Part shown: positions 6,661 through 42,628 of the stretch, piece by piece
How the letters are laid out: every line of letters starts with the position of its first letter
Numbering within the stretch: the first letter of the stretch is position 1
Assembly (NCBI RefSeq): GCF_032191835.1
Contig: NC_083229.1
Span: forward strand, 75,454,001 to 75,518,000
Origin: Heteronotia binoei
Taxonomy: Eukaryota
DNA length: 64,000 nt
Direction: 5' to 3'
Made by a program: the position numbers and the translations under genes
Notes under the pieces: generated by a model
Seen by the model: the letters and a program-made list of their open reading frames with translations, nothing else
What the model was told of the DNA's origin: nothing
Databases searched by the model: none

Positions 6661-8222
6661 GGAAGCATTTTTTTTTTAGGCTTGCCAGCTCTGAATTGGG
6701 AAATACCTGGAGCTTTTTGGGGTGGAGCCTGAGTGGTGGGCATTGCCTTCTGATGCACTTCTGGTTATGTCTGGGGTGTGACATAAGCAAATGAGTTATG
6801 CTAATAAGCTCCGACATCTCTTTTTCTACCAAAGACCTCTTACAATTACTATAGCTAAAGTCTGAAAAAGATAGATTAATGCCATTGTATAGACAAAATT
6901 AGTTACAAAGGACCCTGAGCAATTGATTGGAATTATATTTCCTGATAGGTTATCAGTTATTCCTTCACCATTTTGCCACAAGATGAAGACAAACAAATGA
7001 ATAAATGATCTTTGTATGAAACATTTCTGTATTTCAGCCCTACAATGATAGCACTTCCTTGAAAGCATTTTATTGGAAAACTGACTGAAGCCAAATATTT
7101 CAGATGAAAAACAAAGATTGCATTTTATGAAGACAATATAAAAACCTTCACTTTGTACTAATCAAAATCTGATGGATTTAAAACAACATCAAATTATAAT
7201 ACAGTGAAAAGGAAAGGGAAATTTCTGTACATTTTCCCCATTGATAGTAATGTCTCCTTATGTGTAAATTGCATCAGTTACTTGGGAGGATCTTAGAAGG
7301 AATCATATATTACCATGGGATGATCACTAGCAGTTAATACCCAATGAGAAAAAATGAGCCAACACTCTTAGACATAAAAGTAACAAAGAAAACATAGCTA
7401 GAGTTTCAAGTGTGTTTTTAATCTCTGAACCATGAACAACAGGAAAAAATGTGTGCATGCTTGTAGTTTCTTCAAACAATTATAAAAAGAATAGTGAAGC
7501 TAAAATTTCCCTTAACAAAGGTCTCAGGATAACATTGCGGTTGTAGCTCAGAGGACAAGATTTAGAAAAAGGTTAAATGAAATCTTTTCAAAAGGTGAAA
7601 ATAAATACATAAGTGAGGTTTCAAGCATTTGTATTACTGATTTCTTTTTCATAAATTCTTTGGATTGGGGTCATAGCATTAGATACAAATATTCAATTTT
7701 GGCATATTTATTTTCTTGTTTTTCTAAAGTCCTCTTACATGTAATACAGAGAGAATCAATTTCTCTCACTGTAAAAGCATAGACATTTATCCATTTTGCA
7801 GCTAGCACAACATAGTACATATTGCCCCCCCAGTCGGAAGAACGAGACAACTCGGTATATGGTGTAAAACAGGGCAACTTTATTGAACCAACAGCCTGGG
7901 GCAACCTAAACTAACCGGGGAGGCGAAGGGAACTCCTAAACCCTTCCCTGACCCGATGGGGCGAGCCACCCAGCCCCCAGCAGTAGCCGGGTAAACTAGC
8001 TGCTGCCAGGCCGGAATGGTCGGGTGTAACCTCCAAATGGCGCAGCCGCCCTCCGATGGACGGCTCGCCAACGAGGTAACCCTGTAGCGAGAAAGACAGC
8101 AGAGGGCCGTTTAAACCCAGCTGCCGTCCATCCCCCGCTACTTCCCTTAACGGGGAAAACCATGGGTGGTCACCAAAACAAACCTGCCTTAAAATCCCGC
8201 CACCACCATGCCAAGCCTCAGC

Positions 8223-8824
8223 TTAGGCACTTGGGCCCACAGGGAGGCCTAAAGCCAGCCGGAGCCCCAGGTGTATGTCCAACAAAAACGCCCTGTTGCC
8301 CGCAGCGGACAGGTGGACACCGTCTGGTCGATACAGGTCCACCTTATAAGACCTAATGACCGGGTGAGGAAGGTAGACACCAAGGCCCCCAGCGAGCGCC
8401 CTCCGCATCGCCCTGTTAGCCTTGCGTCGAGCCCTCTCGACCCCGGCAGGGTTTAATGCCGACCTCCACACCCGTCGCGGAAGGATGGCGGACCACAAAA
8501 TCAACACATCAGGCCACCTGCTCCGCAACACCCGGAGGTCTTCGATCGCCTGACGTGACAGGGCCCTCCCCTGCACCAGGCCCAGATCGTTACCCCCGAG
8601 GTGAATCACCAATATCCGGGGCGGAGGGCCGTCCCTCTCCCGGAACAGCAGCGGCAGGAGGCCGTCCCAACGCAGGCCCCGGCGCCCCTGCCATTCCACT
8701 ACTGCCCGCTCGCTGAGGCCCAGCTGCGAACCGAAGGGCGATCGTCGAGCGAAATGGGCAGCCCAAAATATCATGCTGTGGCCGGCGATCAAGATCCTTG
8801 TCCTCTCGCCCCGCGCCACAGCAC
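8223..8824 (-). CDS. SGNH/GDSL-family hydrolase (esterase) of the YR retrotransposon; open frame, probably a spliced exon
   Basis: Block I ILIAGHS, block II GRRG, block III VIHLGGNDL, block V DGVHLS, with no stops. Preceded by a polypyrimidine tract and CAG ending at 8825. Confidence 0.85.
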
Positions 8825-9868
8825 CTGAAACAAAGAAACACAAAAACATGGTGAGAATAACAACCAACCCCTCAATGGGTGATGGGCCGTGGACCTCCAC
8901 CGTCCTACCTTCTGGATGGCAGGTCCCGGATACCCCATGGCTGCAGCCGTCGATGCGGCCCCAATGCGAAAAGAGTGAGTCCCAAACTGGACCCCGCCCA
9001 AGCCAAGCTTGACCAAAGCCCGGCTGGTTATGGACCAGAACTGAAATTTGGTCAATGGCGACCCATCGATGTGACGAAATAAAGGACCAACGTCGTCACC
9101 TCGAACAGCAATGTATTCTTTCAAGGCGACCACCGGGCAGATATCAATATCGTCACACAAACCCAGGGTGATGCTCACCCCGCGCTGTCTCTGGTCAGTC
9201 TTAGACTTACGTATTGATATGACCACGGAGTCTCCCCGAATACTTACATCGCCCGACTGAAGGGCCCGCTGGGACCGATCCTGCCGAGAGCTGACCACCA
9301 GCTCACTCACTCTGAGCGCTCCAAAAAATGCAATAATTGACGCTGCCTGAAAAAGCGCCGACTCGAAACTGGAAGAACAAACTGAAGGCCAAACTGCCCT
9401 GAGCCCCTTCAACACAACGGGGGAAAAGGGTTGCCTCGTATCGGGTCGCGGGCCTTGCTCACGCGCCCAGCCCTCAAGCATTTTGCGCAGTCTGAAATCA
9501 TCAGACCTGTCAGGTAAACCCTTGATTTTTGCATGAAAAGCAAGGGCTGCCAACTTGGACCTAATCGTCTTAACGACCAGCCCCTTACCTTTCAGGTGCA
9601 CACAAAACTGCATGAGGTGGGCCACCGGGACGGGCCACCGGTTAGACAACCCCGCCTGCTCCCTGAAGGACTGGAACTGGTACACCGAATGATCGTAGGC
9701 CTTCCGGGTAGAAGGCGCCAGCGCTAACTTCATTGCTCGGTCGGCCTTGAGTCTCCAAGCCACCACATCTCTGGGGGCATCCGCGCCGGCTGGAGATCGG
9801 CCTCTGGTGCAAGAAGGCGGAAACGCTCCATCTGTCGACGAGACAGAGCGTCCGCAACTCCATTGCAT
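8789..9868 (-). pseudogene. Tyrosine recombinase (lambda-integrase fold), open frame but lacking the catalytic Tyr
   Basis: FFGALRVSEL (R186), RKSKTDQ (K223), HSFRIGAA (H298/R301), GRW (W324). The expected YxxYxRP after GRWRSTA is absent. Confidence 0.85.
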
Positions 9869-11340
9869 ACACCGGGCACATGTTTAGCAAGAAACAAAAC
9901 ATTTAACCGTAAACAACTTAACACGAACGCCCGAACCAGGCGCATAACTGGAACCGACTTGGACGACAATGTATTAATAACGTGGACCACCGCCAAATTG
10001 TCACACCAAAAGTGGACAACCTGGTTGGCCAAATCAGAACCCCATAACTGAAGTGCAACTACTATAGGAAAAAATTCCAAAAAGGTTAAATTCCGGCAGA
10101 GGTCACTGGAAAGCCACTCGTCAGGCCATTCTTCAGCGCACCAATGCCCCCAGAAATAAACGCCGAAGCCGACGGACCCAGAGGCGTCTGATATGACTTG
10201 AAGCTCAGCCTCGAGCTTCAACTCCTCGCGCCAAAAGGACACCCCGTTAAAGTTGACCAAGAAACGTTCCCAAACCCGCAAATCCTGTCGCATGCCTTGA
10301 GTGATCCTAACTCGGTGGTGGGGGCGCCGCAAGCCAGACATGGCGTCGCACAAACGCCGTAAAAACGCTCTACCAGGAGCCACCACTTTACAGGCGAAGT
10401 TGAGGTGGCCCACCAGTGACTGAAGCTCGAGGAGCGACAACTTGCGCTGACCCAATGCCGTCGACAACATCTGCCGCAACCGGTCAATTTTTTCAGCCGG
10501 CAACCTGGAAGCCTGCTGAACAGAATCTAACTCAATGCCTAAAAACGTCAACATAGAGGCTGGGCCTTCAGTCTTCTCATGGGCCAGCGGCACTCCCAAC
10601 TCAGACGCTAAACCCAGGAAGGACTGGAGCAAGTGGGCACACTGGCCCGTCCCGCGACGGCCCACAAATAAAAAATCGTCAAGGTAATGGGCCGTGGAGG
10701 TGGAACCGGACCGCTCCCGCACCGCCCACTCGAGGAAAGTGCTAAAACGCTCAAAAGCCGAGCATGAGATGGCACATCCCATCGGTAGGGCTCGGTCCAT
10801 ATAAAACTTCCCTTCAAATGTGAATCCCAGGAGTTCGAAATCATGCGGGTGGACCGGCAACAGGCGAAATGCTGACTTAATGTCGCACTTCGCCATCTCC
10901 GCTCCCGGCCCACAGCTCCGCACGATCCTGACGGCCTGATCGAATGAGGTGTATCTCACAGTACAGAGAGAATCAGGAATGGCATCGTTCACTGACCCCC
11001 CTTTCGGATAGGAAAGGTGGTGAATCAACCGGAACTCCCCAGGGGCCTTCTTAGGCACCACCCCCAACGGGGATACCCTTAAATTGGGAACTGGGGGAGC
11101 GTCGAAAGGGCCTAGAACTCAGCCCTCCTTGCATTCCTTCATGATTTTCTCACGAACAACCTCCTCCATTCCTTTAACAGAATGTAAGTTCTTGGCCATG
11201 CAGGGGCCCCTGGGACCTTGAAAGGGAATACGAAAACCACGGCAGAAACCTTCCAACAAATAAACTCGATCACGGGGGCGCGGATAGGACACTAACAACC
11301 TCCTAAGAACCGTCACCTTGATGGGGCTGGGACCCTTTTC
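9730..11340 (-). pseudogene. Reverse transcriptase + RNase H (DIRS-type) with one in-frame nonsense codon at 11119-11121
   Basis: SPLGVVPKKAPGEFRLIHHLS, KCDIKSAFR, LPMG, YLDD, SDAS, LEFFP, CDN, ADALSR. The upstream part (SPIK...GFRIPF) is in the same frame, separated by TGA where copy 2 has Arg (EGRVLGPF). This fits CGA>TGA CpG decay. Confidence 0.9.
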
Positions 11341-12823
11341 CAGATGCTTGGCTGCTGCCGCTGTTACCGGGCCGCTTGGCCCCGCCTCGAGGCTTCGTTT
11401 TGCTGCAGGAGGCAAGAGAATGGGAATCGCCGCACAAGGGGCATTCGTGCTTGTATTTGCACGGCTTCCTGCTGCAACCCCCTTGGGACGAGAAATCCCA
11501 ACACACCAGCCGGGGTTGAACCGGCTGCCCCGCTGAGGCGCGGGTACCGGAAGTCGATGCGTGCCGATTGACGAGGTGGCCGCTATCGGACCTGTCACCA
11601 AAGTTAGGCTTAGCAGGTGACATGAGCTGTAGCCACAGCTGCTGGTGAATGTGGTCCCAGGGGAGGGTGGGGTTCAGCGCCGCCCTCATCCGGAACTCCT
11701 CGTCATACTGCAACCATGCAGCACCGGAGAAGTCCGTGTAGGCCTTATAAATAATGTCTAAGTATTGAAAAAGAGGAGAACCCCGTAGAGGTTGCGCACG
11801 TGCAATAACCCCAGCATAGATTAAAAAACCGGGCAACCAATTGGCCCAGTTCCGCTCCACCTTACGACGTTTGATCTTCTCCTTGTCTTTCTCATCTAAA
11901 TCGTCCTTGTCCTTCTTTTCTAACTCACGAAAAAGAAGGCCAAAGACATCAACATATTCGCCCCGGAGAATTCTCTCACGGGTGGCTGTCGTGAGGTGGT
12001 CACCTAATGGCATAGCAGTGTCGCCAAACGGGCGGCAGTGGAAAGGCACAGAGCCCATCAAATTAGGTGAACAGTACCACCCACCCCATTGGGGGGCCGG
12101 CCAGCCCATCGGCGACACGCTGCCCCATTGGTGCCCCCAGGGCAACGAACCCAAAGGGGGCTGTTGACCGGCGGAGCCAGAAGGGGCGGTAGGCGTAGTC
12201 ACAGAACCAGCTCCCTGGGCGGGAGGCCAAGGCAAAATTTGCCCTTGACCCGACAAGCCGGCTAAAGCTGCAGCGTCAGGCGCGAACGCAGGGCCAACTG
12301 GAGACCCGTGGCCGAAATTGGCAGGCGAACCAGCCGCATTCAGTGGGAACCAAGGGGTCCAAGTTCCCCACGGCCACGAACCTGGATGGCCCGGGGGCCC
12401 CTGCTTACCAACTGGCTCCATGCCTGCGGGTGTCCCGGCTGGAATGGCCCCGTCTGAACCGCCTGGGCGGGCGGGCACCTCAGGAGGGTTACCTTCTTTA
12501 CCATCCGAACTGTCATCAGGAGGCACCGGTCCTGGCACGCCAGACGGTCCCGGCTGGGCAGCCATTTCCTGCAAAGAAGAGAGACGAGCCAGAACCTCCT
12601 GTTCGAAGGCCCTGGTGGACGTCCTGGCTGCTTTGCGCCCGCGCGCCGGGAGAGAAGACTGCGGATCGACACCATGGTGTCTTTCCAATGCCTCAAGGCT
12701 GGCCACAATAGCCTGCCTGGTTTGGGCCTCCTGCTCAGCTCCAGGGGGACCGCCAGGGCGAGGTCTCTTCTGACCAGCCTTTAAGGGCTGCTTGCCCTTT
12801 GCCTTTCCCTGTCCCTTAGGCAT
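11303..12823 (-). CDS. ORF1/Gag-like protein of the YR retrotransposon (~506 aa from ATG 12823)
   Basis: Intact ORF with MPKGQGKAKGK start and Pro/Gly linker. The conserved core LGDHL...WLQYDEEFRMRAA is shared with copy 2. C-terminal Zn fingers C-x8-C-x4-C-x3-H and C-x2-C-x3-H-x4-C. Confidence 0.85.
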   Translation of the reverse strand: MPKGQGKAKGKQPLKAGQKRPRPGGPPGAEQEAQTRQAIVASLEALERHHGVDPQSSLPARGRKAARTSTRAFEQEVLARLSSLQEMAAQPGPSGVPGPVPPDDSSDGKEGNPPEVPARPGGSDGAIPAGTPAGMEPVGKQGPPGHPGSWPWGTWTPWFPLNAAGSPANFGHGSPVGPAFAPDAAALAGLSGQGQILPWPPAQGAGSVTTPTAPSGSAGQQPPLGSLPWGHQWGSVSPMGWPAPQWGGWYCSPNLMGSVPFHCRPFGDTAMPLGDHLTTATRERILRGEYVDVFGLLFRELEKKDKDDLDEKDKEKIKRRKVERNWANWLPGFLIYAGVIARAQPLRGSPLFQYLDIIYKAYTDFSGAAWLQYDEEFRMRAALNPTLPWDHIHQQLWLQLMSPAKPNFGDRSDSGHLVNRHASTSGTRASAGQPVQPRLVCWDFSSQGGCSRKPCKYKHECPLCGDSHSLASCSKTKPRGGAKRPGNSGSSQASGKGSQPHQGDGS

Positions 12824-13029
12824 GATGGGTCCCCGGCACCAACACAGGCAACAGCAGTAGCTAACCACTTAGCCTCCGAACCACTATCTGAAACAGAGGG
12901 GGGGGAGGGCTATACCCAGGGACCCCTAAGGACCCCTGGCTGGCGAAATTGTTGAGGGGGGGGAACCCCCAAACCACTTTTACCCACTCCCCCACCGAAG
13001 AGGGCTAACTGGATATAAAGGCCGGGCCC

Positions 13030-13745
13030 TTAGTCCTCCGGCAGGTACCCGCCTAAAGGCCACGCCCAGAAACCTGTCCCCCAATGCCTAGCACGAGAGA
13101 CCAAGAGGAAGAAGAAGGGAAACCTGACACGGCCGATAGCCGCGGGATAAAGCCCAGAGGAGCGCGAGGCCGCCGGCCCCGACGCGGGCGAAAGCCGCGG
13201 GCGGGGCGCCGCTCTCGCGCCGATCAGCTGTGCCAAAAAGCCGCGTAGACAGGCCGCTCCTGTGCCGAGGCCCGAAGGCTCCCTCTCGACGCGGCCGCGA
13301 GCCGAACGCACAGAACAGCGCAAGAACCCGACGCGGGCGAAGCCGCGGGCGGGGCGCTGCTCTTGCGCCGCTCGACTGCGTCGGCAGGCCGCTCCCGGCT
13401 GAAAGCCGCGGGCGGGGCGCTGCACTCGCACCGATCAGCTGCGTCGGCAGGCCGCTTCCGGACAGAGGCCTGACAAGGCTCGTCCTCCCGGCTCTGAAGA
13501 GGGCCGTTCAACCAGCGACCGCGAGGCCCCGACGCTTCAGAGGGAGGTAGGGAGAAGCGTGCTCTCAGTCCGAAAACGGCCAGCGAAGTGCGTGGCCGGG
13601 GGCGTGGTTGGGCTAAAAAGCCCTAGCGCCACGCCCCCCAGCATCCCCGGATGAAAGAGCCGTTTGCCTCGCTCCATCCGGGGAGGCAAACTCGGCCCCC
13701 GCCCTAAAGCAGGCTGCAGCCGGCGCGGGCGGGAAAGGGCCGGAT
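13030..13745 (-). promoter_or_regulatory. CpG-rich 5' UTR/internal promoter of copy 1 with three imperfect ~55-65 bp repeats and a terminal hairpin
   Basis: GAAAGCCGCGGGCGGGGCGC-type repeats near 13190, 13340 and 13401. Inverted repeat at 13657-13693. Confidence 0.55.
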
Positions 13746-21700: not shown

Positions 21701-24700
21701 GAAAGTTCTTCAGCTATTATTTCCAGTTTCTCTAACTTGTTAAATTAAGAGACTAGCAACAGTTTTTAAACAAATTACTATTGTGTCAAAATATTGATAG
21801 TTTCTGCCAGATATTAGTAACTTATCGTTACTAGAAGAAGTGGAGAAAAAGCTATGATTTGCTAAACAAAACTTTTTTGAATTCACCAATAAACCTGGAA
21901 GATGGTTGGTGAACAGACTGAGAAAAGAAGGTGCGAAAAGAGTAATAATGGTCTTGAGAGATGAAAATAATAAAGAGAAATTTCAAAGACAAGAGATAGG
22001 GCAAATTGTGGAGCGATTTTATAAGAAGCTGTATGAGTCTAAGCAACTCAGTGAAGAGGAGTTGATAGAATATCTCAAAAAGAATAACCTGAATAAATTT
22101 ACTGAAGAGCAACGGAAAATTTTGAATGAACCAGTGACAATAAGAGAATTAGGAGAAGCCATAATGAATCAAAAGAATGCTAAATCACCTGGACCAGATG
22201 GTCTCTCTGCAGAGTTCTATAAAGCATTTGAAGATTGTTTATTAATACCATTTAAACAATTGATAGAAGTGATCCAAAAAGAAGCGGAAATTTCAAAATC
22301 ATGGCAAGAAGCAGTAATATCCTTAATTCCAAAAGAGGGTGTGGACTTGAAAGACATAAGAAATTTCAGACCAATTTCATTGTTGAATGTGATTACAAAA
22401 TTTTTGCAATTTTTGCTCAATGTTTGAAAAAGTATTATCAATGGTTATACATCAAGACCAGGCAGGATTTCTTCCCAGAAGATATTTGAAAGATATTGTG
22501 AGAACAATATGTAACCTAATTGAATATTATGAAACACATCCAGAGAAGTAGGCCGTATTAATAACCTTGGATGCAGAGAAGACCTTTGATAATATTCGCT
22601 GGCAATTTATGATACAACAGTTGAAGGGAAGGGAATGTGGTGAGGACTTTTTGAAGGTAGTACAATCAATTTACTCTGTTCAAACAGCCAAGGTGAGAGT
22701 TAATGGCGAATTATCAGAAGCAATCCCCATACAAAAAGGAACTCGACAAGGCTGTCCATTATCTCCGCTACTATTTATTTTGACTTTGGAGATATTGAAT
22801 AATCAGATTAGAGAAGATTCAAATATTAAGAGGGCCTCAATTAAAGGTGAACAATTTAAATTGAGGGCATTTGCGGATGATCTGGTTTTTATATTGGAAC
22901 AACCAGTGGATTCAATCGGCCACTTGATGGATAAAATTGAACAATTTGGTGTCTGGGCAGGCCTGAAGATAAATTATAATAAAACAAAAGTTTTGGCCAA
23001 AAATATGACAACAGAACCAATTCAGTACTTTCAGCAAAAGTCAGCTTTTTTGCATGAGAAAAAAGTGAAATACTTGGGTATCAACATCCATGTAGTAATT
23101 TAATAAATGCAGTGATTTAAAGATGGACAATTATGACAAACAACTTATAGAGATTAAAAAAGACTTGGAAAAATGGCAATATTTGAATATATCATTGATG
23201 GGAAGAATAGCCTCCATAAAAATCAATATTCTACCAAGACTGTTATTTTTATTCCAGACTATACCGGTGTTTCTGACTAATGCCTTCTTTCAAGAGGTGA
23301 ATAAATTGATTTCGGGATTCATATGGAAAAAGAAAACCAAGAATCAAATTAAAACAATCCAAGACACTGAAACAAGAGCAGGTTTGGCTTTGCCAGATTG
23401 GCAACTGTATTACAAAGCTTCAGTGCTATCCTGGGTAAGAGATTGGGCACTTCTAAGTGACAGAAGACAATTATTGTTAGACTAACAATAATTACTAACA
23501 ATTATTGTTAGACCTTAATATGGGTTGGCATGCTTACCTTTGGTATCAAAGATTAGAAGGTCACTCATATTTTAAAAAATCACTAGTTCAGGAAATCCTT
23601 ATACCAGGTTTGGTCACGGCTGAAACCCAAAATTTATCAGAAAATCCCGAAATGGGTCTCTCCAGTTGAAACTTTTACTTCACCAAATCTTATAAAATCA
23701 AACCAGCTATTTAAATATGAAGATCTGTTGAAAAAGGATAACGGTTTGAAATCAAAAGAAGAATTGAAAGATATTGGTATTAAAATGAGTTGGTGGATGA
23801 GACTGCAAACAGAATCCAGATATGCCAAAGATAAAATAATGGGTTTTAATAAAGAATACTATGCATTTGACAAAATATGTTTGGGTCCTCAAGAGCAACT
23901 AATTTCGAAGATATATTCTTACTTACTACAAATGAGAATGCAAGATGAGATTGTGAAGGACTGTATGGTCCAGTGGGCTAAATATCTGGGCCGTAGTATT
24001 ATGTTAGATAAATGGGAAGTGTTATGGAAATCTAATATTAAAATGACTAGATTGGTAGCCTATAAAGAAAATTTGTACAAAATGTTCTATAGGCGGTATG
24101 TAACCTCTCAGAAACTTGCAAAGATGTATCCTAATATGTTTAATAAGTGTTGGAAATGTGAAAAGCAGGTGGGGTCATTTTTCCATATGTGGTGGATATA
24201 TGATGTGGTGAAAGACTTTTGGAAGATGGCCCATGAGTTATTACAAAAATTTTTGAAGACACAGATTCATTTCAAACCAGAACATTTTTTATTGAACATT
24301 TTGCCGAACACATATACAAAGGAGATGAGACACTTAATTGTCCATTTAACACAGCAGCTAGAATTCTTCTGGCACAGAAATGGAAGCTTCAGGACATTCC
24401 CTCCAGATCTGATCCGATGAGCAAAATTCTGGAGGCGGCGGAAGCAGATTATTTATCTCAGCTGTTGGTGGGGAAGTCAAAGGACGATGCAAGGAAATGT
24501 TGGGAGAAGCTATGTCTGGCTAGACATGTAAGACTCTGTGGTGTAAACTCACATTTTTATTATATATCCAAAGATACCTAATCTATATAGAGAGGAAATA
24601 CTTTGTATTTGGAAAGATATTTCTAGATTTGATTTACAATCGGATAAGATTTTTTTTCTTTAACAGATTATGAAAATAAGCAAAAATTGTTATTATTACT

Positions 24701-26541: not shown

Positions 26542-27913
26542 ATGGCTGGTGGTAAGGGGTCTGGGAAGGCTAAGGGCAAGAAGCCAGCGCCCAAGACACC
26601 TAGGGCACTGCCTAAGAGACCTCCTCCTCCTACATTTTCGTCTGATGAGGAGGGTGATGGGGTGGTGGAGGCTAACATTATGAGCAGACTGAGGGCGCTT
26701 GAGCAAGCGTCAGGTCTGCCTTGTCCTGGGGGGCTAAACGGTCCTGAGACATCCAGAAGGGGTCGCCAAGCCAACATTTTAACTAGGCTTTCTTTCCTTG
26801 AGGGCAGGTCTGCTGGTGCATCTATGGATGCTGGGTCCACTGGGGTGAATTCGGCAGCGGCTGCTGGAGCGTTTGGTCTGGGGATGGCGGTTGTTCCTTC
26901 TGGATGGGCTGGTAAGTTGGCCAGAAATTTACAGGTGGGTAGTGGTCAGGTTTGGCCATGGAGTCCTTGTGGCCCCACCTTATTGGCTGGACAAGGGTGC
27001 CCCTCGTCTAGTTCAGGCATGCCTTCTGCCTCTGGGTTTGGGTCCCCTGTTACCTGGCCTGGGTTTAGTGGGCAAGGGGGGCCTTGCGGGGCTTGTGTGT
27101 GTGCTGGTCAATTGGGTATGGCTAGCCCCTTCATCGGGGCACCTTTCCTTTATGGAATGGTGCCTTTTGCTTCTTTGCCCTTTGTTGCTCTACCATTGGG
27201 TGACCACCTGCTCCCCGCAATGCATGAGAAAATATTAAAAGGGGAGTATGTTAATATATTTTCCTTGCTCTTTAGGGAATTGGAAAAAAATATAAGGAGG
27301 ATTTAGATGAAAAAGAGAAGGAAAAATTTAAAAGTGTAAGGTGGACAGAATCTGGGCCAATTGGCTTCCAAGGTTCTGTATATATGCAGGGGTGGTCGTC
27401 CGGGCGCAGCCTTGGAGGGCTGCGGCCCTTTTTCAGTATTTGGATATTATATATAAGGGCTATATGGCCTTTAGTGGCCCGGTGTGGCTACAGTATGACC
27501 AAGAGTTTCGGATGAGGGCTGCCCTTTATCTGTCTCTTCCGTGGAACAGGATCCACCAGCAGCTTTGGCTGCAGGTTATGTCCCCTGCCAGGCCTAATCT
27601 GGGTGACTGCTCCGACAGCGGCCATTTGGTAAATAGGTCCTCCTCTGCTGTGTCGGCTTCGTCAGGCTCTCCCCGCAGTGCTGCGGGGCAGGCGGTTCAA
27701 CTCCGCTTGCTCTGCTGGGAGTTCGGTTCCCTCGGGGTTTGAAATAGGAAAGCGTCCCAGTTTAGGCACCAATGCCCATTGTGCGGGGGATTGCATTCCT
27801 TTGACAGCTGCTCCAGAGCCAGGGGATGTAAGAACCCGAAAAAGCCTGGGGGAGCTAGAGGAGCCTTTCCAGCTAATATAGGGCTCCAGCCCGATAAGGG
27901 TGGGGCCTCTTGA
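26542..27913 (+). pseudogene. ORF1/Gag of copy 2, frameshifted (26542-27306, 27341-27742, then Zn-finger tail)
   Basis: MAGGKGSGKAKGKK start, LPLGDHLL...ILKGEYVNIFSLLFRELEK, WLQYDQEFRMRAA, LCWEF. All are homologous to copy 1. Confidence 0.85.
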
Positions 27914-29486
27914 ACAGTGGCTGGCAGAGTATCCCAGAAGAGCCGATAGTTTGTATTTGTTGGGTGGTTTTAGGTTTGGTTTTAGGATCCCATTTCATGG
28001 GCCTAGAGTTCCGTTTCTTTCAGGTAACCTTAAGTCTGTGCTGGGTTTAGAGTACGTGGTTAGAGATAAAATTGCTAAGGAGCTAGGTGAAGGAAGGGTG
28101 TTGGGTCCCTTTTCATGTCCTCCAGTGAGTACTCTTAGAGTCTCTCCTCTGGGGGTGGTACCCAAGAAGACGCCTGGTGAATTTCGTTTGATTCACCACT
28201 TTTCTTTTCTGAAAGGAGCATCTGTGAATGATGGGATCCCCGAACACTTATGCTTGGTTAGGTATACCAGCTTTGACCAGGCCATTGCTGTGGTACGGCG
28301 TTGTGGGGTTGGGGCTGAAATGGCGAAATGCGACATTAAGTCAGCCTTTCGCCTTTTGCCTGTTCGCTCTGCTGATTTTGAGCTCTTGGGGTTTCGTTTT
28401 GAAGGGCAATTTTACAAGGACAGAGCATTGCCAATGGGCTGCTCTGTATCATGTTCGGCTTTTGAATGTTTCAGCAGATTTTTAGAAAGGGCTGTGCGGG
28501 TGAAAGTGGGTTTGCAGGACGTCGTTCATTATCTGGACAACTACATCTTTGTGTGTCCTTTAGGATCAGGGCGTTGTGCTCAGCTGCTGTCTGGCTTTGT
28601 TGAGCTAGCTGAGGAGCTGGGGGTTCCGCTAGCACCTGAGAAGACTGAGGGACCAACCCAGAGGTTGACCTTTTTGGGGATTGAGATCGACACTATTGCA
28701 CAGTTGTCGAGGGTGCCCCTTCAGAAAATAGTTGAGCTAAGGGCTAGGATTTCTACCTTTCTTCTTAAGAGGAAAGTTACGTTGCTGGAGTTGCAGCAGC
28801 TGATTGGGCACCTCAACTTTGCTTGCAAGGTGGTTGCTCCTGATAGGGCTTTTCTTAGAAGGCTGTGCGATGCTATGGCAGGATTATGCCTGCCTCAGCA
28901 TAGAACTAGGGTTACACGCAGCATGAGGGTTGATTTGGAGGTTTGGCAGGAATTTTTGGAGTCCTTTAATGGAGTCTCTTTTTGGAGGGACGATTTGGGG
29001 CTTGAAGCTGAGCTCCAGGTCATGTCTGATGCTGCGGGATCGTTAGGTTTTGGGGTCTACTTTCGTGGACATTGGTGTACGGATAGTTGGCCTGACTCTT
29101 GGGCGATGATGGGTGTGAACCGAGATCTTACATTTCTTGAGTTCTTTCCTATTTTAGTTGCGGTTTGGCTGTGGGGGAAGGATATGGCCAATCACACGGT
29201 GCATTTTTGGTGTGATAATATGGCGGTTGTCCACATCATTAATTCCCTTACATCCAAATCCAGGAGGGTTATGCGGTTGGTGAGGGCCTTCACTCTGCGC
29301 TGTTTGCAGCTTAACATTTTGTTTTTAGCCAGGCATGTTCCGGGTGTGAGTAACGGGGTGGCTGATGCTCTATCTCGTAAACAGATGGAGAGGTTTTGTC
29401 AGCTGGCCCCGGAGGCCGACAGAGAGCCGGTTGCAATGCCCCAGGAGCTATGGCTGATTGGAGAGCCGATGTGTGCAGAGCGATAG
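27900..29486 (+). CDS. Reverse transcriptase + RNase H of copy 2 (uninterrupted frame; YLDD reads YLDN)
   Basis: 528-codon open frame with GFRIPF, SPLGVVPKK, KCDIKSAFR, LPMG, HYLDN, SDA, CDN, ADALSR. Confidence 0.9.
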   Translation: MGPLEQWLAEYPRRADSLYLLGGFRFGFRIPFHGPRVPFLSGNLKSVLGLEYVVRDKIAKELGEGRVLGPFSCPPVSTLRVSPLGVVPKKTPGEFRLIHHFSFLKGASVNDGIPEHLCLVRYTSFDQAIAVVRRCGVGAEMAKCDIKSAFRLLPVRSADFELLGFRFEGQFYKDRALPMGCSVSCSAFECFSRFLERAVRVKVGLQDVVHYLDNYIFVCPLGSGRCAQLLSGFVELAEELGVPLAPEKTEGPTQRLTFLGIEIDTIAQLSRVPLQKIVELRARISTFLLKRKVTLLELQQLIGHLNFACKVVAPDRAFLRRLCDAMAGLCLPQHRTRVTRSMRVDLEVWQEFLESFNGVSFWRDDLGLEAELQVMSDAAGSLGFGVYFRGHWCTDSWPDSWAMMGVNRDLTFLEFFPILVAVWLWGKDMANHTVHFWCDNMAVVHIINSLTSKSRRVMRLVRAFTLRCLQLNILFLARHVPGVSNGVADALSRKQMERFCQLAPEADREPVAMPQELWLIGEPMCAER

Positions 29487-29632
29487 GTCTAGCCATAGCA
29501 CTCGGAAGTCTTATGAATGGGCTGTGCGGCAGTTTGAGGACTTTCGGGCAGCCTTCCACCTCTATTCAGAGGTTGGGGCGTTGGCATTCATCGGCCTATA
29601 AGGCCTATGTGCGGCCTTTGCTTAGGCCGTGA
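29396..29632 (+). pseudogene. Tyrosine recombinase remnant: N-terminal ~30 codons joined to the C-terminal GRWHSSAYKAYVRP; ~730 bp core deleted near 29548
   Basis: WRADVCRAIGLAIA / TRKSYEWAVRQFEDFR aligns with aa 38-69 of copy 1 YR, then jumps to QPSTSIQRLGRW, which aligns with aa ~313-324. Confidence 0.85.
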
Positions 29633-29692
29633 ATGAGTTGGGTTTCGGGGAATGTTCTGTTTGGTTGGTGTTTAACTGTTTTTTCTTTTTAG

Positions 29693-30305
29693 ATGCTGTT
29701 ATTCCTGGCCAGAAGAGCCGGAGCCGAGTTCTCATCTGCGACCATAGCCACGTGTTTGGGGCCGCTCTGCACGCACGGAGAACTGTGGTGGGCTCTCAGC
29801 TGGGACTCAGCTAGCATGCTGTTATTGAGTGGCAGGGGTGCCGTGGCCTTCAGTGGTCAGGCCTGCTGCCTTTACTGTTTCGTGATAGAGTGGGTCCTCC
29901 TCCTCAGGTCTTAATAGTTCACCTGGGAGGTAATGATCTGGAGTTACTGAAGGGCAAGGCCTTAGTTTGGCAGGCCCGTGATGATTTTTTGCACATTCGG
30001 GAGCGATGGCCGGGGACCATCATAGTGTGGTCAGCTATGCTGCCCCGCCTGGTATGGCATTGTGCTTTGGACCCTGCCGCGGTAGAAAGGGCCAGGTACA
30101 GGGCTAATTAGGAGCTTTAAAAAAAAAGCTGCTCGAGAAAGGGTTGGGCCACTATTTGCCCCATCCGGATATTTTGGTAAAATGTCCTGGCCTCTACAGA
30201 GGGGATGGGGTCCATCTCTCGGAAAAGGGTAATATGCTTTTCCTGAGAGATTTGCAGCAAGGGTTGCGGGTGGCTTTGGGCCTCCCAGTGGGCGCTAAGC
30301 CCTAA
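29693..30305 (+). pseudogene. SGNH hydrolase of copy 2 (stops at 29812 and 30109, frameshift in the A-run ~30118-30127)
   Basis: VLICDHS, LIVHLGGNDL, WSAMLPR, DGVHLS, and C-terminus LGLPVGAKP* versus LGLPVGPSA* in copy 1. Preceded by a polypyrimidine tract and TAG ending at 29692. Confidence 0.85.
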
Positions 30306-32039
30306 GTAGAGACTTGGCCTTAGTAGTGGCATGTTTTTGGGGTTTAGGGCGCTATGCAGCCAGGGGAGGACTGTGAAGCATCCCCCTTTTGGGGAATTTG
30401 GGGTCTGGCATGATCAATCCTGGGGTTTGAAGACCCGGGTGGAGATTGCAGACTGCTGGGAGACTTGGCTAGAGGGTACTTTCTGGCGAGACGTGCGTTT
30501 GGGTTTGGGCCCTCTGGTGTGGGCCTCCCTGCTGGGCCTGCTCAGAGGGAGCTGAGGCGCTTTGCTCTGGCCGGGGGGCTGGGTCTCTCGCCCGTTATGG
30601 CAGGGGACCGGTCGCGGTGACCCCTAGCCCTGGCCAGGCTGCTGGTGGGGTACCCTTGCTGTTTGTGAGGTTAATTAATAAAGTGGCCCAATTTTATTCC
30701 AATCACTTGGTGTCTGTCTCATTATTTCGTCCTTGGGGGGGCAAATTAGCTGGAAAGAAATATTAAGGTGGCTGCTGATAGAACCGAGGAATATGGACAC
30801 TTCTTCTGCCATCCCCCATTCCCATTTACAGAACCAGTCACATTAAAGCTAGACCAGATGCCAGAGAGAGGATGGCCTTGATTGTATGTGGCTTGTGTTG
30901 GGTATCAAGAACAATTTTGGGATCCTGCTGGTATATTGTCTGCTTAGTTTACCAGCAGGATCTCTGGTTAAGCTGATGGAAGTGGTGCTGAGAACCCCAA
31001 GGATTATGGTCCTTGGGGATTTCAGCATGTATGCTGAGGCTGCTTTGTCAGATCAGACTCAGGACTTCAGGGCCACTGTGTCAACCATGGGTCTTTCTCA
31101 AATTGTAATGGGCTTACAGCATGAAAAAGGCCATATGCTGGACCTTCTTTTCTGAACTGAATGACTTGCCATGATCTGGTTAAGGAGATTGAAATTTGGT
31201 CCTTATAATCAGAATACAGTCTTTTGAATGCATGGTTGAGCTTACTGCCTTCTCCCTAAAGGAACAGTAGACCAATTCAGATGATCCATTATCAGAGATT
31301 AATGGACTCTGTTGGTTTCCAAGTGGCTATGGGGATTTTGAGAGCACCTCTGGTAATTCTGTGGATGCCATTGTAGTTAGGTGGAAGCATAGGTTCATAG
31401 AGGCTATAAAATAGAGTTGCTTCTTGAGGTCCTCTTCCACATTCTGTGAGGCCCTCAGCTCCTTGGTTTACCAGGGAGCTGGGTGACATGAAGCAGAGTG
31501 GAAGAGGACTAGAGTGACATTGGACAAAGACTGTGGATGAATTAGACTATGTCATAAAAGGTATTTAAAGGCCCATGAGTGGTGATAACAGCAGAGAGAG
31601 AGACTTTCTTCTCTGTTGCCATTGTGTCAGCTGAATCTTGTCCAGCTCAATTGTTTAAAATGGTTTGTGACTTGATACCACCATACTGGTGGTGAAAAAT
31701 TCCTCCCCCCAGCTGTGATGTTTTTGCAAAGTTCCTTGCTGGATTGTTTCAGATTGTTTCTGGCTATGAATGCTGATAGGGTTTTTGGGAGTGTGAGGGC
31801 CATCATGTGTCCTCTGAACCCATGACCATAGTGATGTTTAAAATCTTGCCAGAAAAAGGTATTGGAGCCATTGGTGAAAATCATCAACTCCTCCCTGATA
31901 GAAGGGCCTCTCCCTAGGCCTTTGAAGAAGGCAATTATTAGACCTCCGCTTTAAACGCCCCCCCCACACACACACACCTTTATCTACTAGAGATAAGTTG
32001 GCTAATTACAGGCCAGTCTCCAATTTACCTTTTCTAAAG

Positions 32040-32718
32040 AAAAGGTAAATTGGTGTTATGGTAGAACAGGTGACAGAATGGAAGTTTCTGGGAATTACCA
32101 TGAAACAGGATCTAACATGGGGGGCAAATACTTTAGCTCTAGAGAAAAAGGCCCAGCAACGACTATACTACTTAAGACTCTTAAGATCACTACAACTGTC
32201 AGGAAGTCTGCTGGTTGCCTTTTATCGTAGTTCCATTGAGAGCATTTTATCTTATTGCCTCTGCGTGTGGTTTGGGAGCTGCACGGAAGCAGAGAGAAGG
32301 GTGCTCCAAAGAGTGACGAGAAGAGCACAAAAGATTTGTGGATGTTCTCTCCCCTCATTGGTGGATCTGTATAATATGGGATGTAAAAGGAAGATACAAA
32401 TGATCCTAAGGGACCCTTCACATCTGGGCCATTTGCTATTTGAGATCTTACCGTCAGGTAGACGATATAGAGTGTTGAAGGCTAGGACAAACAGATTTAA
32501 GGACAGTTTCTATCCAAGTGCTGTGGTTAGGTTAAATGCAGGGTTATGAAGGATTATCTGTTTTAGATGTATTTAAATGGTTTAAATGGTTTTAATGGTT
32601 TAAATGGTTTTAGATGTATTTTAAATGGTTTATGAATATGTGTGTTTGATGTGTTGGTATGTTTGTGGAAGAGCACCTCATTTCGTTGCTCTCTTTTTGT
32701 TGAGAACAATGACAATAA

Positions 32719-35800: not shown

Positions 35801-35979
35801 TCAATTAGGTAAGATGGCAAAAATTAGTGGGGTTTAGTAACCTATCTATATGAGAGTCAGTATTCCTCAAGAGCCCTTAAGTCATCAAAGATTTCAGGTT
35901 TTCACGGCTGGTAACATCATTAGGGTTTGTAGAGTCTTTCGGGATCAAATGCCATGTTCTACTGGAGAAAGTTTTCCTT

Positions 35980-36020
35980 CCAGACGTTTCGTTCTCAGCT
36001 GCGGAGAACATCCTCAGTGG
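35980..36020 (-). ncRNA. Minimal type I hammerhead ribozyme-like motif (Penelope pLTR)
   Basis: cca-CTGAGGA-t-GTTCTC-cgcagct-GAGAAC-GAAA-CGTC-tgg: CUGANGA core, 6-bp stem II, GAAA, palindromic ACGU stem III, GUC site. Confidence 0.6.
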
Positions 36021-36605
36021 CGTTGCAGCCGGAGCAGGCGCTCAGACCTTCTTGGCTGCTGTGCATTGAGTGGAGCCAGGGCTGCTGGAGAGCTACTATT
36101 TCTAGGCTGGAGGGGGTGTGATGAAAGGGCAATAGGTTTGTGGATGTGCCCATTGTTTGGTGGGGCTTCCTGGAAGGGTAGTGATAAGGAAACTGGCTGT
36201 TGAATGTGACCATTGTTCTGTGTTAATTGCTGGGAGGGTTGGAAGGGGTTTGAAGATAAGGAAGATGGTTGTTGACTGTGCTGATTGCTCTGTGGAATTT
36301 GCTGGTTGTTCTGAGACTTTCTGCAATTTATAGTCTGTAGGGTGTTTTGCAGAGCTGGGTACCAAGATTGATGGATGAAAATTCCAACCCTCCCAGCAAT
36401 TAACACAGAACAATGGTCACATTCAACAGCCAGTTTCCTTATCACTACCCTTCCAGGAAACCCCACCAAACAATGGGCACATCCACGAACCTATTGCCCT
36501 TTCATCACACCCCCTCCAGCCTAGAAATAACAGCTCTCCAGCAGCCCTGGCTCCACTCAATGCACAGCAGCCAAGAAGGTCTGAGCGCCTGCTCTGGCTG
36601 CAACG

Positions 36606-36646
36606 CCACTGAGGATGTTCTCCGCAGCTGAGAACGAAATGTCTGG
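36606..36646 (+). ncRNA. Second hammerhead-like motif (ACGT mutated to ATGT)
   Basis: CCACTGAGGATGTTCTCCGCAGCTGAGAACGAAATGTCTGG. Confidence 0.5.
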
Positions 36647-37984
36647 AAGAAAAACTTTCTCCAGTAGAACACGGCACTTGATCCCGAAAGACTCTACAAG
36701 CCCTTAAGTCAATGATGAGATTTTGGATATAAAGTAAATTAGTTTCATTCAAGGAAATTCAAGCATACAAGGGAAAATAATACATTCAGCACACACAGTT
36801 CAGAACCAGGAAAATAGCTAGAAAAGACAGGGATGTTTGCATTAGCAGGAGTATCGTTGGCGGTAATACATTACCTGTCCAGGCGAGAAAAAGATTCAGC
36901 AGTGAGAAGGAAGGCATGAGATGGCCAGCACCACGTGGAGAAAGGACCCAAAATGATCAGGAATAGGGGTGACTCCTTCAGCAAGGTAACTATCAAGAAA
37001 AAGTCACACCTGAATGGCAAGAAGATCTGCCTTATAGCCAATTTCATAACCTGGGGCAGGTTCTCATGATGGGATTTCCTGGCAGGTTAATGGTTCCCAG
37101 GAAATTTAACAGTAGTACCCAGGGAGTTATTAATGTGCCTCTGAATAAAAACATATACCAAATAAAGAAAACCAGAATGGACAATTTAGGTCTGATGGGT
37201 TGATGTGGTGACAGGGAATATGGGGGAAACAAAGGGATCTGGAAGGGTGGAGATGAGTAGCAGGATTTGGTTGATGATGAATATAAGATGATGAAATTAG
37301 TCCAATGATGTTCTATTGACAGAGGTGCTATTTTGAATTGGTGGCAGGAAGAGTCCTTTGCCCACCAGTAATCATTATGGTTGCCTCACATCAGTTCCTT
37401 TGACTTTGACTGGGCAGCTGACATCTGCATGATGCAAGGATCCTGGAATGCAGTATGTGGTGAAGACACAGTCTCATCATGGCTGCTGCAGGAAAATAGT
37501 GTGTCATTTTAAAATCTCCAGGAACATGGTTCCTCTAGGTCTGCTGTTGGTCTTGTCTTCTATGAAGACAGGGTTGCAGGCATCTGCAACAGGGACTGGG
37601 CAGCTAAGGAATGAAGCATGGTCTGAAGTCCTTGAAGTTTATATGGGCAAAGCAGCCCACAGCATAATAGTTCCAGCGATGGGTGCTTGAACCTGGTTTG
37701 GATCAGCACCACTGCAGTGTGAGAGGGTCAAATACCCCAAAAGCTGGACTGGCATGACTGCCAATCTGTATATAGTACAAAGTCAAGTGTGGGGGTTTCT
37801 GGAAATCATGGCTCTTTTGCAACACTAGACTATTACAATTTGTACTACTCAGGGCTGCCCTTGAAGATGCACCAGAAGCTTCACATTATCCAGAATGCAG
37901 CTGGTAGGTTTTTGACCAATGCATTATAGATCCAAAACTGCTTACTTTGTTGTAAACCAATTGGGGGAACACAGTATATGAACA

Positions 37985-38841: not shown

Positions 38842-40499
38842 GTGATTACTTTGTTGTAAGGCAACCAAAGCCTCAGTTGTTGAGAGAGTTGTGGAATATA
38901 AATTTGACAAAATAAATAGAGTGGCTACAGAAGGTAGATACTCTAGGAATCCTGTTTCATCTTTGATATACCATAGAAACTAGTAGAAATTGATTCATCA
39001 CCCATAAAGGTACTATAGGCCAGAGGCTGGTTAGGATTGCAAAAAGGAGACCTTAGTTTGATTCTCTATAAACAGTGGCCTCTATCTTGATTTGATGCCC
39101 TCTGAATACACATACTAGTAAGGGGACCACCTCAGGTGGGGAAAAGTAACATAGCTAGAAGTGACATTATTTATTAAGATGAATGTTAGCTACTGCCTAT
39201 TGCTGGGAATGAGATAGGTTTCCTAGTAGGAAAGAAGATCACTCACTCCAGGCTCCTCTTCTCCACTGTTGTTTCTGCAGGTGGTGTGAGAAAGCAAAAG
39301 TTGTTGGTGATGGCATGACATCAGTTCAGGGGAAAACCCAAAAGTAATGTCAGTCTACTCTAGAAATTGCAGTTTATTCCTAGATAGGCATGATGGCACT
39401 TTCAGGTTTTCCATGGAAATCACATTATTACCCAACTGTATGCCCTATGTCCCATTCTCCCAGACTCCTTCCAGTTGCCTGGCAACCCTAGATTTAGAGC
39501 TGCTGGCAGTGTAATTAACACAGCAATGATGCACAGCCTGATTAAAGAGTAGATAAAGGTTTTTTTAGGAACTAATATACTTGACAGTAAAAAGGAGAGA
39601 CAGAGATAGGTTCCTCGCAACATCTCTATTTGAAAGAGTGGCAGAAACTAAGTGTGGAACTTCCATGAAGAAGAAGGAAATTGCCCTAAGAGTAGCAATC
39701 TGGAATGGCAAGGAATGACCCTTAATAGGAGAGAAGGTGCTGACTATCATATCTAATTGTCTTCTTGTTGCACCTGTCAGGGTTTTCTTTGTATACCAGA
39801 AATTGTCTTAACCAACAAAAGCAAGTATCGAATTTTAATTAGTCTGTTACATTTTTATCCCTTTCTGCAAGCTGTTCAGAATAACGTAATAGTCATTTTT
39901 GTCCACACTGAGGCCATATGCAACTGCAAGATATGTTGTGGTGTTTTCTGGGGCCATACAACACTAAACCCCACCCCCATGCTCCTGGGAGTTGCCAGTC
40001 TTTGCATCTCACAGCTGCTATCAGACCCTCATAGGGGTTTTTTATTTAAAAAAACAAGCAAAAAACTACAAAGGCCACCACCCTCTCATTCATATCTAAA
40101 GAAGGGGCTCTGTTATCACCATTAAGTGAGTGCCGGTGAGGAAAATTAAGCTGGGCTCACTCCTTTTCCATAACCCAGTTTACTCTGCTTCTTAAAGCAT
40201 TTTTACCTCAGTCAGGCTTACTTCACTACTAGGGTGGCCAGACCGTCCCGGTCTCCCGGGACTTTCCCGGTTCTGGCCCCCAATTCCCGGCTCCCGGGCT
40301 GGGTATACCGGGACCATTAGAGGTCCCGGTTTAGCTAGCCAGAGAGCCGGGGGCCGCGCGCGCGGGCGGGGAAGGCGGCGAGTGAGGGAGGGAGCGACCC
40401 TGCGCGTGCGCAGATTGCCCTGCGCGTGCGCAGATTGCCCTGCGCATGCGCAGGGACGCTCCCTCCCTTACTCACTGCCTTCCCCGCCCGCGCACGGGG

Positions 40500-41465
40500 C
40501 CCGGCGGTGGCGGCGGAGGCCCGGGAGGGCGTCGGAAAGGCCCGCGCTGGTCGCTGGAGGGCCTCCAGCGACCACCGCGGGCCTTTCCGAGGCTTCCCCG
40601 GCCTCTACCACCCCCCCCGGTGCTCCTCCGCCCGGGAGGGCGTCGGAAAGGCCCGCGCTGGTCGCTGGAGGGCCTCCAGCGACCACCGCGGGCCTTTCCG
40701 ACGCTTCCCTGGCCTCTACCACCCCCCCTGTGCTCCTTCACCCGGGAGGGTGTCGGAAAGGCCCGCGCTGGTCGCTGGAGGGCCTCCAGCGACCACCGCG
40801 GGCCTTTCTGAGGCTTCCCCGGCCTCTACCACCACCCCCGGTGCTCCTCCGCCCGGGAGGGCGTCGTAAAGGCCCGCGCTGGTCGCTGGAGGGCCTCCAG
40901 CGACCACCGCGGGCCTTTCCGACGCTTCCCCGGCCTCTACCACCACCCCCCCCCCGGTGCTCCTCCGCCCGGGAGGGCGTCGGAAAGGCCCGCGCTGGTC
41001 GCTGGAGGGCCTCCAGCGACCACCGCAGGCCTTTCCGAGGCTTCCCCGGCCTCTACCACCCCCCCCCCGGTGCTCCTCCGCCTGGGAGGGCGTCGGAAAG
41101 GCCCGCGCTGGTCGCTGGAGGGCCTCCAGCGACCACCGCGGGCCTTTCTGACGCTTCCCCGACCTCTACCACCCCCCCGGTGCTCCTCCGCCCGGGAGGG
41201 CGTCGGAAAGGCCCGCGCTGGTCGCTGGAGGGCCTCCAGTGACCACCACGGGCCTTTCCGAGGCTTCCCCGGCCTCTACCACCCCCCCCGGTGCTCCTCC
41301 GCCCGGGAGGGCGTCGGAAAGGCCCGCGCTGGTCGCTGGAGGGCCTCCAGCGACCACCGCGGGCCTTTCCGACGCTTCCCCGGCCTCTACCACCCCCCCC
41401 GGTGCTGGCGGAGGCCCGGGAGGGCATCGGAAAGGCCTCTTCGCCGCCGCCGTAGGTAAGGGGGC
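40500..41465. repeat. GC-rich ~110-115 bp minisatellite, 8 full units plus a partial one, each with a ~65-nt hairpin
   Basis: Unit starts near 40521, 40631, 40741, 40852, 40968, 41081, 41191, 41302, 41415. Core TCGGAAAGGCCCGCG-ctggtcgctggagg...cctccagcgacca-cCGCGGGCCTTTCCGA. Confidence 0.9.
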
Positions 41466-41486: not shown

Positions 41487-41894
41487 NNNNNNNNNNNNNN
41501 NNNNNNNNNNNNNNNNNNNNNNNNNNNNNNNNNNNNNNNNNNNNNNNNNNNNNNNNNNNNNNNNNNNNNNNNNNNNNNNNNNNNNNNNNNNNNNNNNNNN
41601 NNNNNNNNNNNNNNNNNNNNNNNNNNNNNNNNNNNNNNNNNNNNNNNNNNNNNNNNNNNNNNNNNNNNNNNNNNNNNNNNNNNNNNNNNNNNNNNNNNNN
41701 NNNNNNNNNNNNNNNNNNNNNNNNNNNNNNNNNNNNNNNNNNNNNNNNNNNNNNNNNNNNNNNNNNNNNNNNNNNNNNNNNNNNNNNNNNNNNNNNNNNN
41801 NNNNNNNNNNNNNNNNNNNNNNNNNNNNNNNNNNNNNNNNNNNNNNNNNNNNNNNNNNNNNNNNNNNNNNNNNNNNNNNNNNNNNNNNNNNNNN
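41487..41894. other. Assembly gap (408 N)
   Basis: Run of N. Confidence 1.
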
Positions 41895-42620: not shown

Positions 42621-42628
42621 TTCTAGTG

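Follow-up and report, generated by a model that had tools for sequence, protein, structure and literature searches.

Vertebrate Ngaro retrotransposons have for twenty years been listed with an extra open reading frame (ORF) for a hydrolase, its function and mode of expression unexplained. Published accounts, in the sections that deal with this frame, count it as a fourth ORF that overlaps its neighbour and stands by itself, 'with no proven function', and make no mention of splicing (PMC9210276; PMC6681497). We asked how such a cistron could be translated in an element that lies within 64,000 nucleotides (nt) of DNA from Heteronotia binoei (NCBI RefSeq assembly GCF_032191835.1, contig NC_083229.1, positions 75,454,001 to 75,518,000 of the forward strand). 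This whole stretch is called the window here, and coordinates are counted from its first base. On its minus strand, at 8223-12823, lies an element copy (copy 1) whose cistrons follow one another in the order Gag, reverse transcriptase (RT)/RNase H, tyrosine recombinase (YR) and SGNH esterase. An earlier reading of the letters alone, which we refer to as the original prediction, had proposed that splicing fuses the N-terminus of Gag to the esterase. Comparison with homologous elements brings us to a similar view: the SGNH cistron is probably not translated alone, but from a subgenomic spliced mRNA that joins the Gag N-terminus to the esterase.

By its coding content, copy 1 is a Ngaro-type YR retrotransposon. 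It has RT/RNase H and a tyrosine recombinase and no DDE integrase; it has no methyltransferase, and Pfam finds only Lipase_GDSL_2 after the YR. The published description of vertebrate Ngaro elements, with no methyltransferase and a hydrolase ORF behind the YR, matches this arrangement (PMC9210276), and hydrolase-bearing Ngaro elements of Xenopus (DIRS-53_XT and DIRS-54_XT; Goodwin and Poulter 2004, as cited in PMC9210276) share the gene order and the lack of a methyltransferase. Unlike the hydrolase ORF of those accounts, the one studied here is apparently the second exon of a fusion with the Gag N-terminus. The copy 1 YR scored 25.2 bits against Phage_integrase, slightly below the cut-off of 27.1, and no Pfam match was found for the Gag ORF of 506 amino acids (aa). 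The intact counterpart of the RT/RNase H frame, in element L001 of the leopard gecko Eublepharis macularius (hereafter the gecko), is 633 aa long.

Gene models and splice signals shared among relatives

Proteins related to the SGNH ORF are already annotated with a Gag part attached. The closest are 63-71% identical; they are NCBI gene-model proteins of the gecko, 333-347 aa in length, and further model relatives come from Heteronotia binoei, Elgaria and Rhineura. The first ~140 aa of these models are the Gag N-terminus and the final 200 aa are SGNH. Their N-termini are Gag-like, with MPPKKG.G.SKGKQPAKRP, an acidic SSSDDE patch and helices of the types ILxRLxALE and VLxRLSALE, and they pass straight from the Gag part into ...EGDG-AV.R.R.RILICGHS.... 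The annotated genes consist of the Gag ATG plus about 110-145 codons, an intron of 3.5-3.6 kilobases (kb) and a 602-nt SGNH exon. In the five gecko families whose loci we compared (L001, L002/3, L005, L006 and L007/8/9), the model has exactly two exons, an exon 1 of 412-430 nt counted from the Gag ATG and an exon 2 whose 602 nt equal the length in copy 1. The donor is G/GTAAGT, G/GTAAGC or G/GTACGG (the slash marks the splice junction), the acceptor is a pyrimidine tract followed by AG, and the intron contains intact ORFs for the rest of Gag, RT/RNase H (633 aa) and YR (308 aa). Two-exon, phase-1 models are also found in a further gecko family, L011/12 (CTG/GTAAGG ... tcctag/GT), in Heteronotia (GAG/GTAGGT ... 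ttttag/AT) and in the iguanian Anolis sagrei (CAG/GTAACG ... ttttcag/AT). Canonical GT...AG signals with branch motif and pyrimidine tract, in compatible phase 1, as a spliced subgenomic mRNA calls for, occur in ten lineages. The fusion that the original prediction had put forward has counterparts in two-exon models of Eublepharis (seven families or loci), Heteronotia and Anolis, but the donor in these models is a different one, and we infer the splicing itself.

Proteins of similar build are annotated well beyond geckos. A profile search of 1.84 billion representatives returned 2692 relatives. Annotated proteins that combine an N-terminal extension and an SGNH domain in 330-450 aa occur in squamates (Anolis, Pogona, Podarcis, Hemicordylus and Rhineura), in frogs (Xenopus, Bombina, Spea, Ranitomeya, Eleutherodactylus and Leptodactylus), in caecilians and in a newt; at the level of annotation, the gene ranges of the newt and Bombina proteins, 4.4 and 6.2 kb, are element-sized. 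Two much longer models also end in the SGNH domain, P0053 of Elgaria ('zinc finger protein 318-like', 1429 aa) and P0056 of Eublepharis ('SRRM2-like', 2061 aa). Both probably stem from host or mis-merged transcripts that were spliced to the acceptor of the element, in which case this acceptor is able to capture exons lying upstream.

The acceptor was placed correctly in the original prediction, at an AG in phase 1, and exon 2 begins at 8824. Its first two bases finish a codon, which makes the intron a phase-1 intron. Position and phase of the acceptor are kept in 10 diverged lineages, listed as the two copies in the window, seven families or loci of the leopard gecko, Heteronotia and Anolis. 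Branch motif, pyrimidine tract and AG all stand at one codon position and phase in these lineages, while the flanks are not conserved.

The donor required a closer comparison. Three phase-1 donor-like sites lie in the first 660 nt of copy 1 Gag, with exon ends at 12502, 12493 and 12409. The site favoured by the original prediction, GAAG/GTAACC with its exon end at 12493, is present and in phase 1, but the homologous donor is GTTG/GTAAGC at 12409. When Gag N-termini are aligned, all annotated donors, the GCTG/GTAAGT of the second copy in the window (copy 2) and this copy 1 site fall in one column, which copy 1 shares with the donors of seven other lineages. The copy 1 residue in that column belongs to ...MEPV-G-KQGPP..., and the column lies 10-13 codons ahead of a conserved WPW motif. 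Residues around it are not conserved, and G/GTA.G is retained though the second codon varies (AAG, ACG, AGG; K, T, R). Since the nucleotides are kept while the amino acids change, the pattern is one predicted of a splice signal and not of a constraint on the protein. Donor strength was ranked with a rough position-weight matrix, not with MaxEntScan; by this measure GTTG/GTAAGC has the top 5' splice site score in the first 660 nt of copy 1 Gag, and the homologous site is the best 5' splice site-like sequence of that interval in 7 of 8 lineages. The 12493 site, in contrast, lies 28 codons further 5', in a stretch without counterpart in the other lineages. Conservation across copies, which the original prediction proposed to examine, holds for acceptor, phase and the homologous donor, and not for the 12493 site, which aligns with no annotated donor. 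The true donor of copy 1 probably lies within Gag 84 nt 3' of the site first proposed (Table 1).

Each of the three sites gives an open product. Joining 12409 to 8824 yields a predicted protein of 338 aa, against 337-343 aa in the gecko; joining 12493 to 8824, with a 3668-nt intron, yields the open, in-frame product of 310 aa that the original prediction described; and joining 12502 to 8824 yields an open, in-frame product of 307 aa. A real splice in which copy 1 uses GAAG/GTAACC (12493) or ATG/GTAAAG (12502), alone or as alternative 5' splice sites, with products of 310 or 307 aa, is the first rival to consider. Both sites are present in phase 1 with open frames, and the exon side of AAG/GTAAC is better than that of TTG/GTAAGC; the donor of the Anolis element is CAG/GTAACG, and the junction made from 12493, KEG-AVARGER, resembles the gecko's AEG-AVGRQER. 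Yet it is 12409, and neither of these two, that aligns with the annotated donors of relatives; 338 aa fits the gecko range and 310 aa does not; and the GTA of the 12502 site (positions 12499-12501) is altered in related copies from sequencing runs X1 and X2. We regard this rival as unlikely, and prefer the junction at 12409, although 12493 or 12502 may also serve in copy 1 as alternative donors.

Table 1. Features of the two element copies, in window coordinates (slash, splice junction).
Feature	Position	Strand	Remarks
Exon 1 of copy 1, coding part: Gag ATG (12823-12821) plus 138 codons and 1 base	12409..12823	-	end aligns with annotated donors of gecko and Anolis
Candidate donor GTTG/GTAAGC, phase 1; Gag codons GGT AAG (Gly-Lys)	12403..12408	-	homologous to all annotated donors
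Donor candidate of the original prediction, GAAG/GTAACC, phase 1	12487..12492	-	exon end 12493
Third donor candidate, ATG/GTAAAG, phase 1	12501-12496	-	exon end 12502
Predicted intron, 3584 nt: rest of Gag, RT/RNase H, YR	8825..12408	-	gecko introns 3517-3615 nt
Putative 3' splice region	8825..8860	-	branch-like CTCAC, pyrimidine tract, AG at 8826-8825
Exon 2 of copy 1, coding part, 602 nt including stop at 8225-8223	8223..8824	-	SGNH; GHS, GGND, DGVH intact
Full Gag ORF, 506 aa	11303..12823	-	conserved core WLQYDEEFRMRAALN and Cys/His knuckle
RT/RNase H frame	9730..11601	-	RVT_1, E 7.5e-13; in-frame stop at 11121-11119
Tyrosine recombinase ORF	8789..9868	-	SAM-like N-domain, HSFRIG...GRWRS motifs; frame extends 36 nt into exon 2
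SGNH esterase ORF	8223..8900	-	Pfam Lipase_GDSL_2, E 3e-10
Candidate polyadenylation signal AATAAAGTTGCCC	7872..7884	-	~340 nt past SGNH stop; kept in copy 2 at 30677-30689
Exon 1 of copy 2, Gag ATG to GCTG/GTAAGT	26542..26911	+	phase 1
SGNH exon of copy 2	29693..30305	+	preceded by ...ttttctttttag/, AG at 29691-29692, phase 1

RNA evidence and readings without a splice

Several observations weigh against a spliced Gag-esterase mRNA, or at least against its use by copy 1. We obtained neither a read nor a contig of this genome that spans the junction, and contigs from runs X1, X2, X5 and X7, which derive from diverged relatives at 80% likeness, have no listed joint at any candidate junction. 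The gene models on which the comparison draws can be propagated by cross-species protein evidence. The rough scores of the three copy 1 donor candidates, 7.4, 6.9 and 5.8, separate them poorly, and copy 1 has an in-frame ATG of its own for SGNH. Copy 1 is moreover defective, with its RT stop and aberrant YR tail, and may be silent. We list here too a prediction of two chains of Gag residues 30-111, which returned no verdict on self-association and is evidence neither way.

For 8000-13000 no RNA run was listed. A search with the SGNH exon found two metatranscriptomic runs, with small shares. The X1, X2, X5 and X7 contigs, from diverged members of the family, cover both exon and intron parts. 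One X5 contig, in which 12568 is joined to 11737 and 11682 to 8838, was considered as a spliced form and rejected, because it retains 14 nt of the pyrimidine tract before the acceptor and also part of the Gag core; its appearance is that of a copy with internal deletions.

It could be that nothing is expressed, that copy 1 is a dead relic and that the gene models are artefacts which chain two ORFs through a chance GT and AG. The missing direct RNA evidence for the junction is in keeping with this, as is the state of copy 1, with its RT stop, its aberrant YR tail and Ngaro terminal repeats that were not found. Chance, however, would not hold the top-scoring donor in one column and the acceptor at one codon and phase among lineages whose proteins are only 40-57% identical. 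Several of the loci also have numbered isoforms, which the NCBI pipeline is not known to issue without transcript support, and the host-gene chimeras that end in the SGNH exon suggest that the acceptor is in use. We consider an artefact of annotation improbable, and a spliced mRNA the better account of the models.

Whether the esterase could be translated without a splice turns on what precedes the acceptor. The original prediction held that the SGNH frame has no credible AUG before its GHS block. Copy 1 does have an in-frame ATG, at 8849-8847, which lies within the pyrimidine tract, 8 codons ahead of the acceptor, but this ATG is not conserved. The SGNH frame 5' of the acceptor comprises 6-26 open codons and no ATG in 6 of 9 lineages, where the next Met comes past the catalytic Ser; an in-frame ATG within this short open stretch is found only in copy 1, L001 and L004. 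SGNH proteins derived from Logan all begin at a Met after the catalytic Ser or within degraded copies, and are uninformative on the junction. As for the cistron upstream, in every intact lineage YR terminates 14-60 nt short of exon 2, and the YR frame relative to SGNH is +1, +2 or the same frame with an intervening stop, depending on the lineage. Because this relation varies, a conserved programmed frameshift linking YR to SGNH is incompatible with the sequences compared. Among the findings that would speak against it, the original prediction had named a conserved in-frame AUG and a frameshift joining YR to SGNH in intact copies; the nine lineages compared contain no such AUG, and the intact copies no constant frame relation.

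That the esterase is made without splicing, from the ATG at 8849-8847, by reinitiation, by internal entry or by YR-SGNH frameshift or readthrough, is very improbable: the description of these elements, in its part on the hydrolase, does list it simply as a fourth, overlapping ORF (PMC9210276), and three lineages do have an ATG, but most have none, open stretches of only 6-11 codons occur, a stop always stands between YR and SGNH in a frame relation that differs by lineage, and it is the 3' splice signals, not their flanks, that are retained.

The predicted fusion protein and its precedents

In exon 1 a basic N-terminus is followed by two short helices (about aa 41-57 and 80-98) and by a variable linker; Gag would have this part in common with the predicted fusion. 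Gag residues 1-111, used as query in a word-index homologue search, matched nothing. We modelled the gecko homologue P0009 with AlphaFold from a 13-sequence alignment. In the model, residues 38-55 and 80-95 form helices, 96-148 a disordered linker and 150-340 a confident SGNH fold, with a predicted local distance difference test (pLDDT) score of 80-94. The two helices that the original prediction had seen in the Gag N-terminus are thereby supported in a homologue, at 16-18 residues each and with moderate confidence.

Foldseek searches with the gecko model recovered SGNH hydrolases, PAF-acetylhydrolase-like proteins and the esterase of ZfL2-1, confirming the SGNH fold; the ZfL2-1 esterase is 22% identical to the model by this comparison. 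The best solved relative by sequence profile is likewise the esterase of ZfL2-1 ORF1p, 4c1b (E 1.8e-5; E 0.015 with a single sequence). Copy 1 carries the SGNH blocks IAGHSM, HLGGNDL and PDGVHLS, its score against PF13472 is 41.3 bits where the cut-off is 32.9, and across 13 homologues the GHS, GGND and DGVH columns vary little or not at all. Judged by its residues, the copy 1 esterase is catalytically intact: the Ser of GxS, the oxyanion Gly and Asn of GxND, and DxxH, which define SGNH/GDSL enzymes, are all in place.

We propose the following route to this protein. A single transcript would initiate 5' of Gag. In the variable linker past the Gag helices, a phase-1 donor, most likely GTTG/GTAAGC at 12409, would be joined to the AG that sits directly after the YR cistron, and the 3584 nt removed would comprise the Gag core, RT/RNase H and YR. 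Translation would give a 338-aa protein made up of a basic tail, an acidic Ser patch, two helices, a disordered linker and the SGNH esterase, while the unspliced RNA would serve as Gag/RT/YR message and as template for reverse transcription. Because the fusion would carry exactly the N-terminal module of Gag, it may co-assemble with it, entering Gag assemblies or the ribonucleoprotein of the element through the shared module and adding a lipid- or acetyl-esterase activity. Use of the splice in vivo, transcription of copy 1, co-assembly and substrate are all things that we infer.

Such a scheme has a precedent in retroviruses. The env of avian leukosis and Rous sarcoma virus uses the gag AUG and the first gag codons. 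As in the subgenomic env mRNA of retroviruses and gypsy-type elements, a single transcript here would have a donor near the start of gag and an acceptor before the 3' gene, the product would begin with Gag residues, and the unspliced RNA would be both genome and Gag/Pol message. Unlike in retroviral env, ~138 Gag codons, a whole structural module, would be kept; the 3' gene encodes a cytosolic-type esterase; and the element is of the YR class, without long terminal repeats.

The second precedent concerns the protein. ORF1p of ZfL2-1, a zebrafish long interspersed nuclear element (LINE) of the CR1/L2 clade, combines a dimerising N-terminal coiled coil with an SGNH esterase that is active on p-nitrophenyl (pNP)-acetate and binds negatively charged liposomes (PDB 4c1a and 4c1b; PMC3905857). 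The predicted fusion would resemble it in that a single chain carries short helices at the N-terminus, then a linker, then an esterase. Whereas ZfL2-1 ORF1p is encoded by one contiguous ORF of a non-LTR element, the protein described here would be assembled by splicing in a YR element, with its helices taken from Gag. The element, with Gag, RT/RNase H and YR, does not carry the ORF1 of a non-LTR retrotransposon, and the likeness to ZfL2-1 is one of domain and layout only.

Element type and hydrolase ORF are already known; for the splice to the Gag N-terminus we found no description, the full-text literature on Ngaro and SGNH containing no account of splicing that we could find, though older reviews may mention it. 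It is an evenly balanced question whether tetrapod Ngaro elements use a retrovirus-like splice to make a second, Gag-like esterase protein that co-assembles with Gag, a strategy convergent with CR1/L2 ORF1p and undescribed for YR retroelements. If they do, a conserved splice would explain how the hydrolase is translated when most copies have no AUG of their own, and it would place the esterase physically with Gag. YR retroelements would then be a second independent case, beside the esterase-bearing LINEs, in which a helical assembly module is paired with an SGNH esterase, and the case for a role of lipid or membrane chemistry in retrotransposition would be stronger. There are consequences for annotation as well. 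Fused proteins are already in RefSeq under uninformative names, and hundreds of reptile and amphibian genes listed there as 'uncharacterized protein' or 'PAF acetylhydrolase-like' probably encode the product of this transposon; some host-gene models end in the transposon's SGNH exon.

Condition of the two copies and their surroundings

Copy 1 is not autonomous, to judge from its coding sequence, because RT carries an in-frame stop and YR has lost its Tyr motif: past GRWRS, the YR tail is without the A(Y/F)xxY(V/I)RP motif that copy 2 and all relatives have. Gag, the esterase exon and the two splice regions have stayed intact, but as the lesions number only two, this distribution is not significant. 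The split direct repeats of Ngaro elements, A1...B1-A2-B2, were sought in copy 1 and not found. They are clear in the gecko relatives L002 and L007, where they are 100% identical, and since they are identical these gecko relatives are, on this measure, young, recently active elements. One of three near-identical gecko copies (L007/L008/L009), L008, stops after B1 and lacks A2-B2, a structural variant of the terminus.

Copy 2 lies on the plus strand at 26542-30305, is ~72% identical to copy 1 and is more decayed. Several stops interrupt its Gag and SGNH frames, and its YR is mostly deleted, with only the tail GRWHSSAYKAYVRPLLRP left after the end of RT/RNase H (window 29486-29632, plus strand); the donor G/GTAAGT and the acceptor are intact all the same. 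Downstream of the SGNH stop, at ~340-370 nt, both copies keep AATAAAGT(T/G)GCCC, a candidate polyadenylation signal.

Upstream of copy 1, 370-640 nt before the Gag ATG, the window holds GC-rich tandem repeats with a unit of ~59-63 nt (13192-13461). A similar tandem array lies 5' of Gag in gecko element L001, at 2050-2469, and the array may belong to the leader or promoter of the element family. Copy 2 is flanked by plus-strand open frames at 23728-24420 and 32058-32549 that resemble LINE-type C-terminal fragments of other retroelements. Outside the elements, four regions (41830-42633, 40390-41360, 42629-43535 and 35922-36704) contain among them a 67-nt tandem array of ~12 units and a 110-nt repeat family, together with two long inverted repeats, one of 401 nt at 98% identity and one of 323 nt at 97%.

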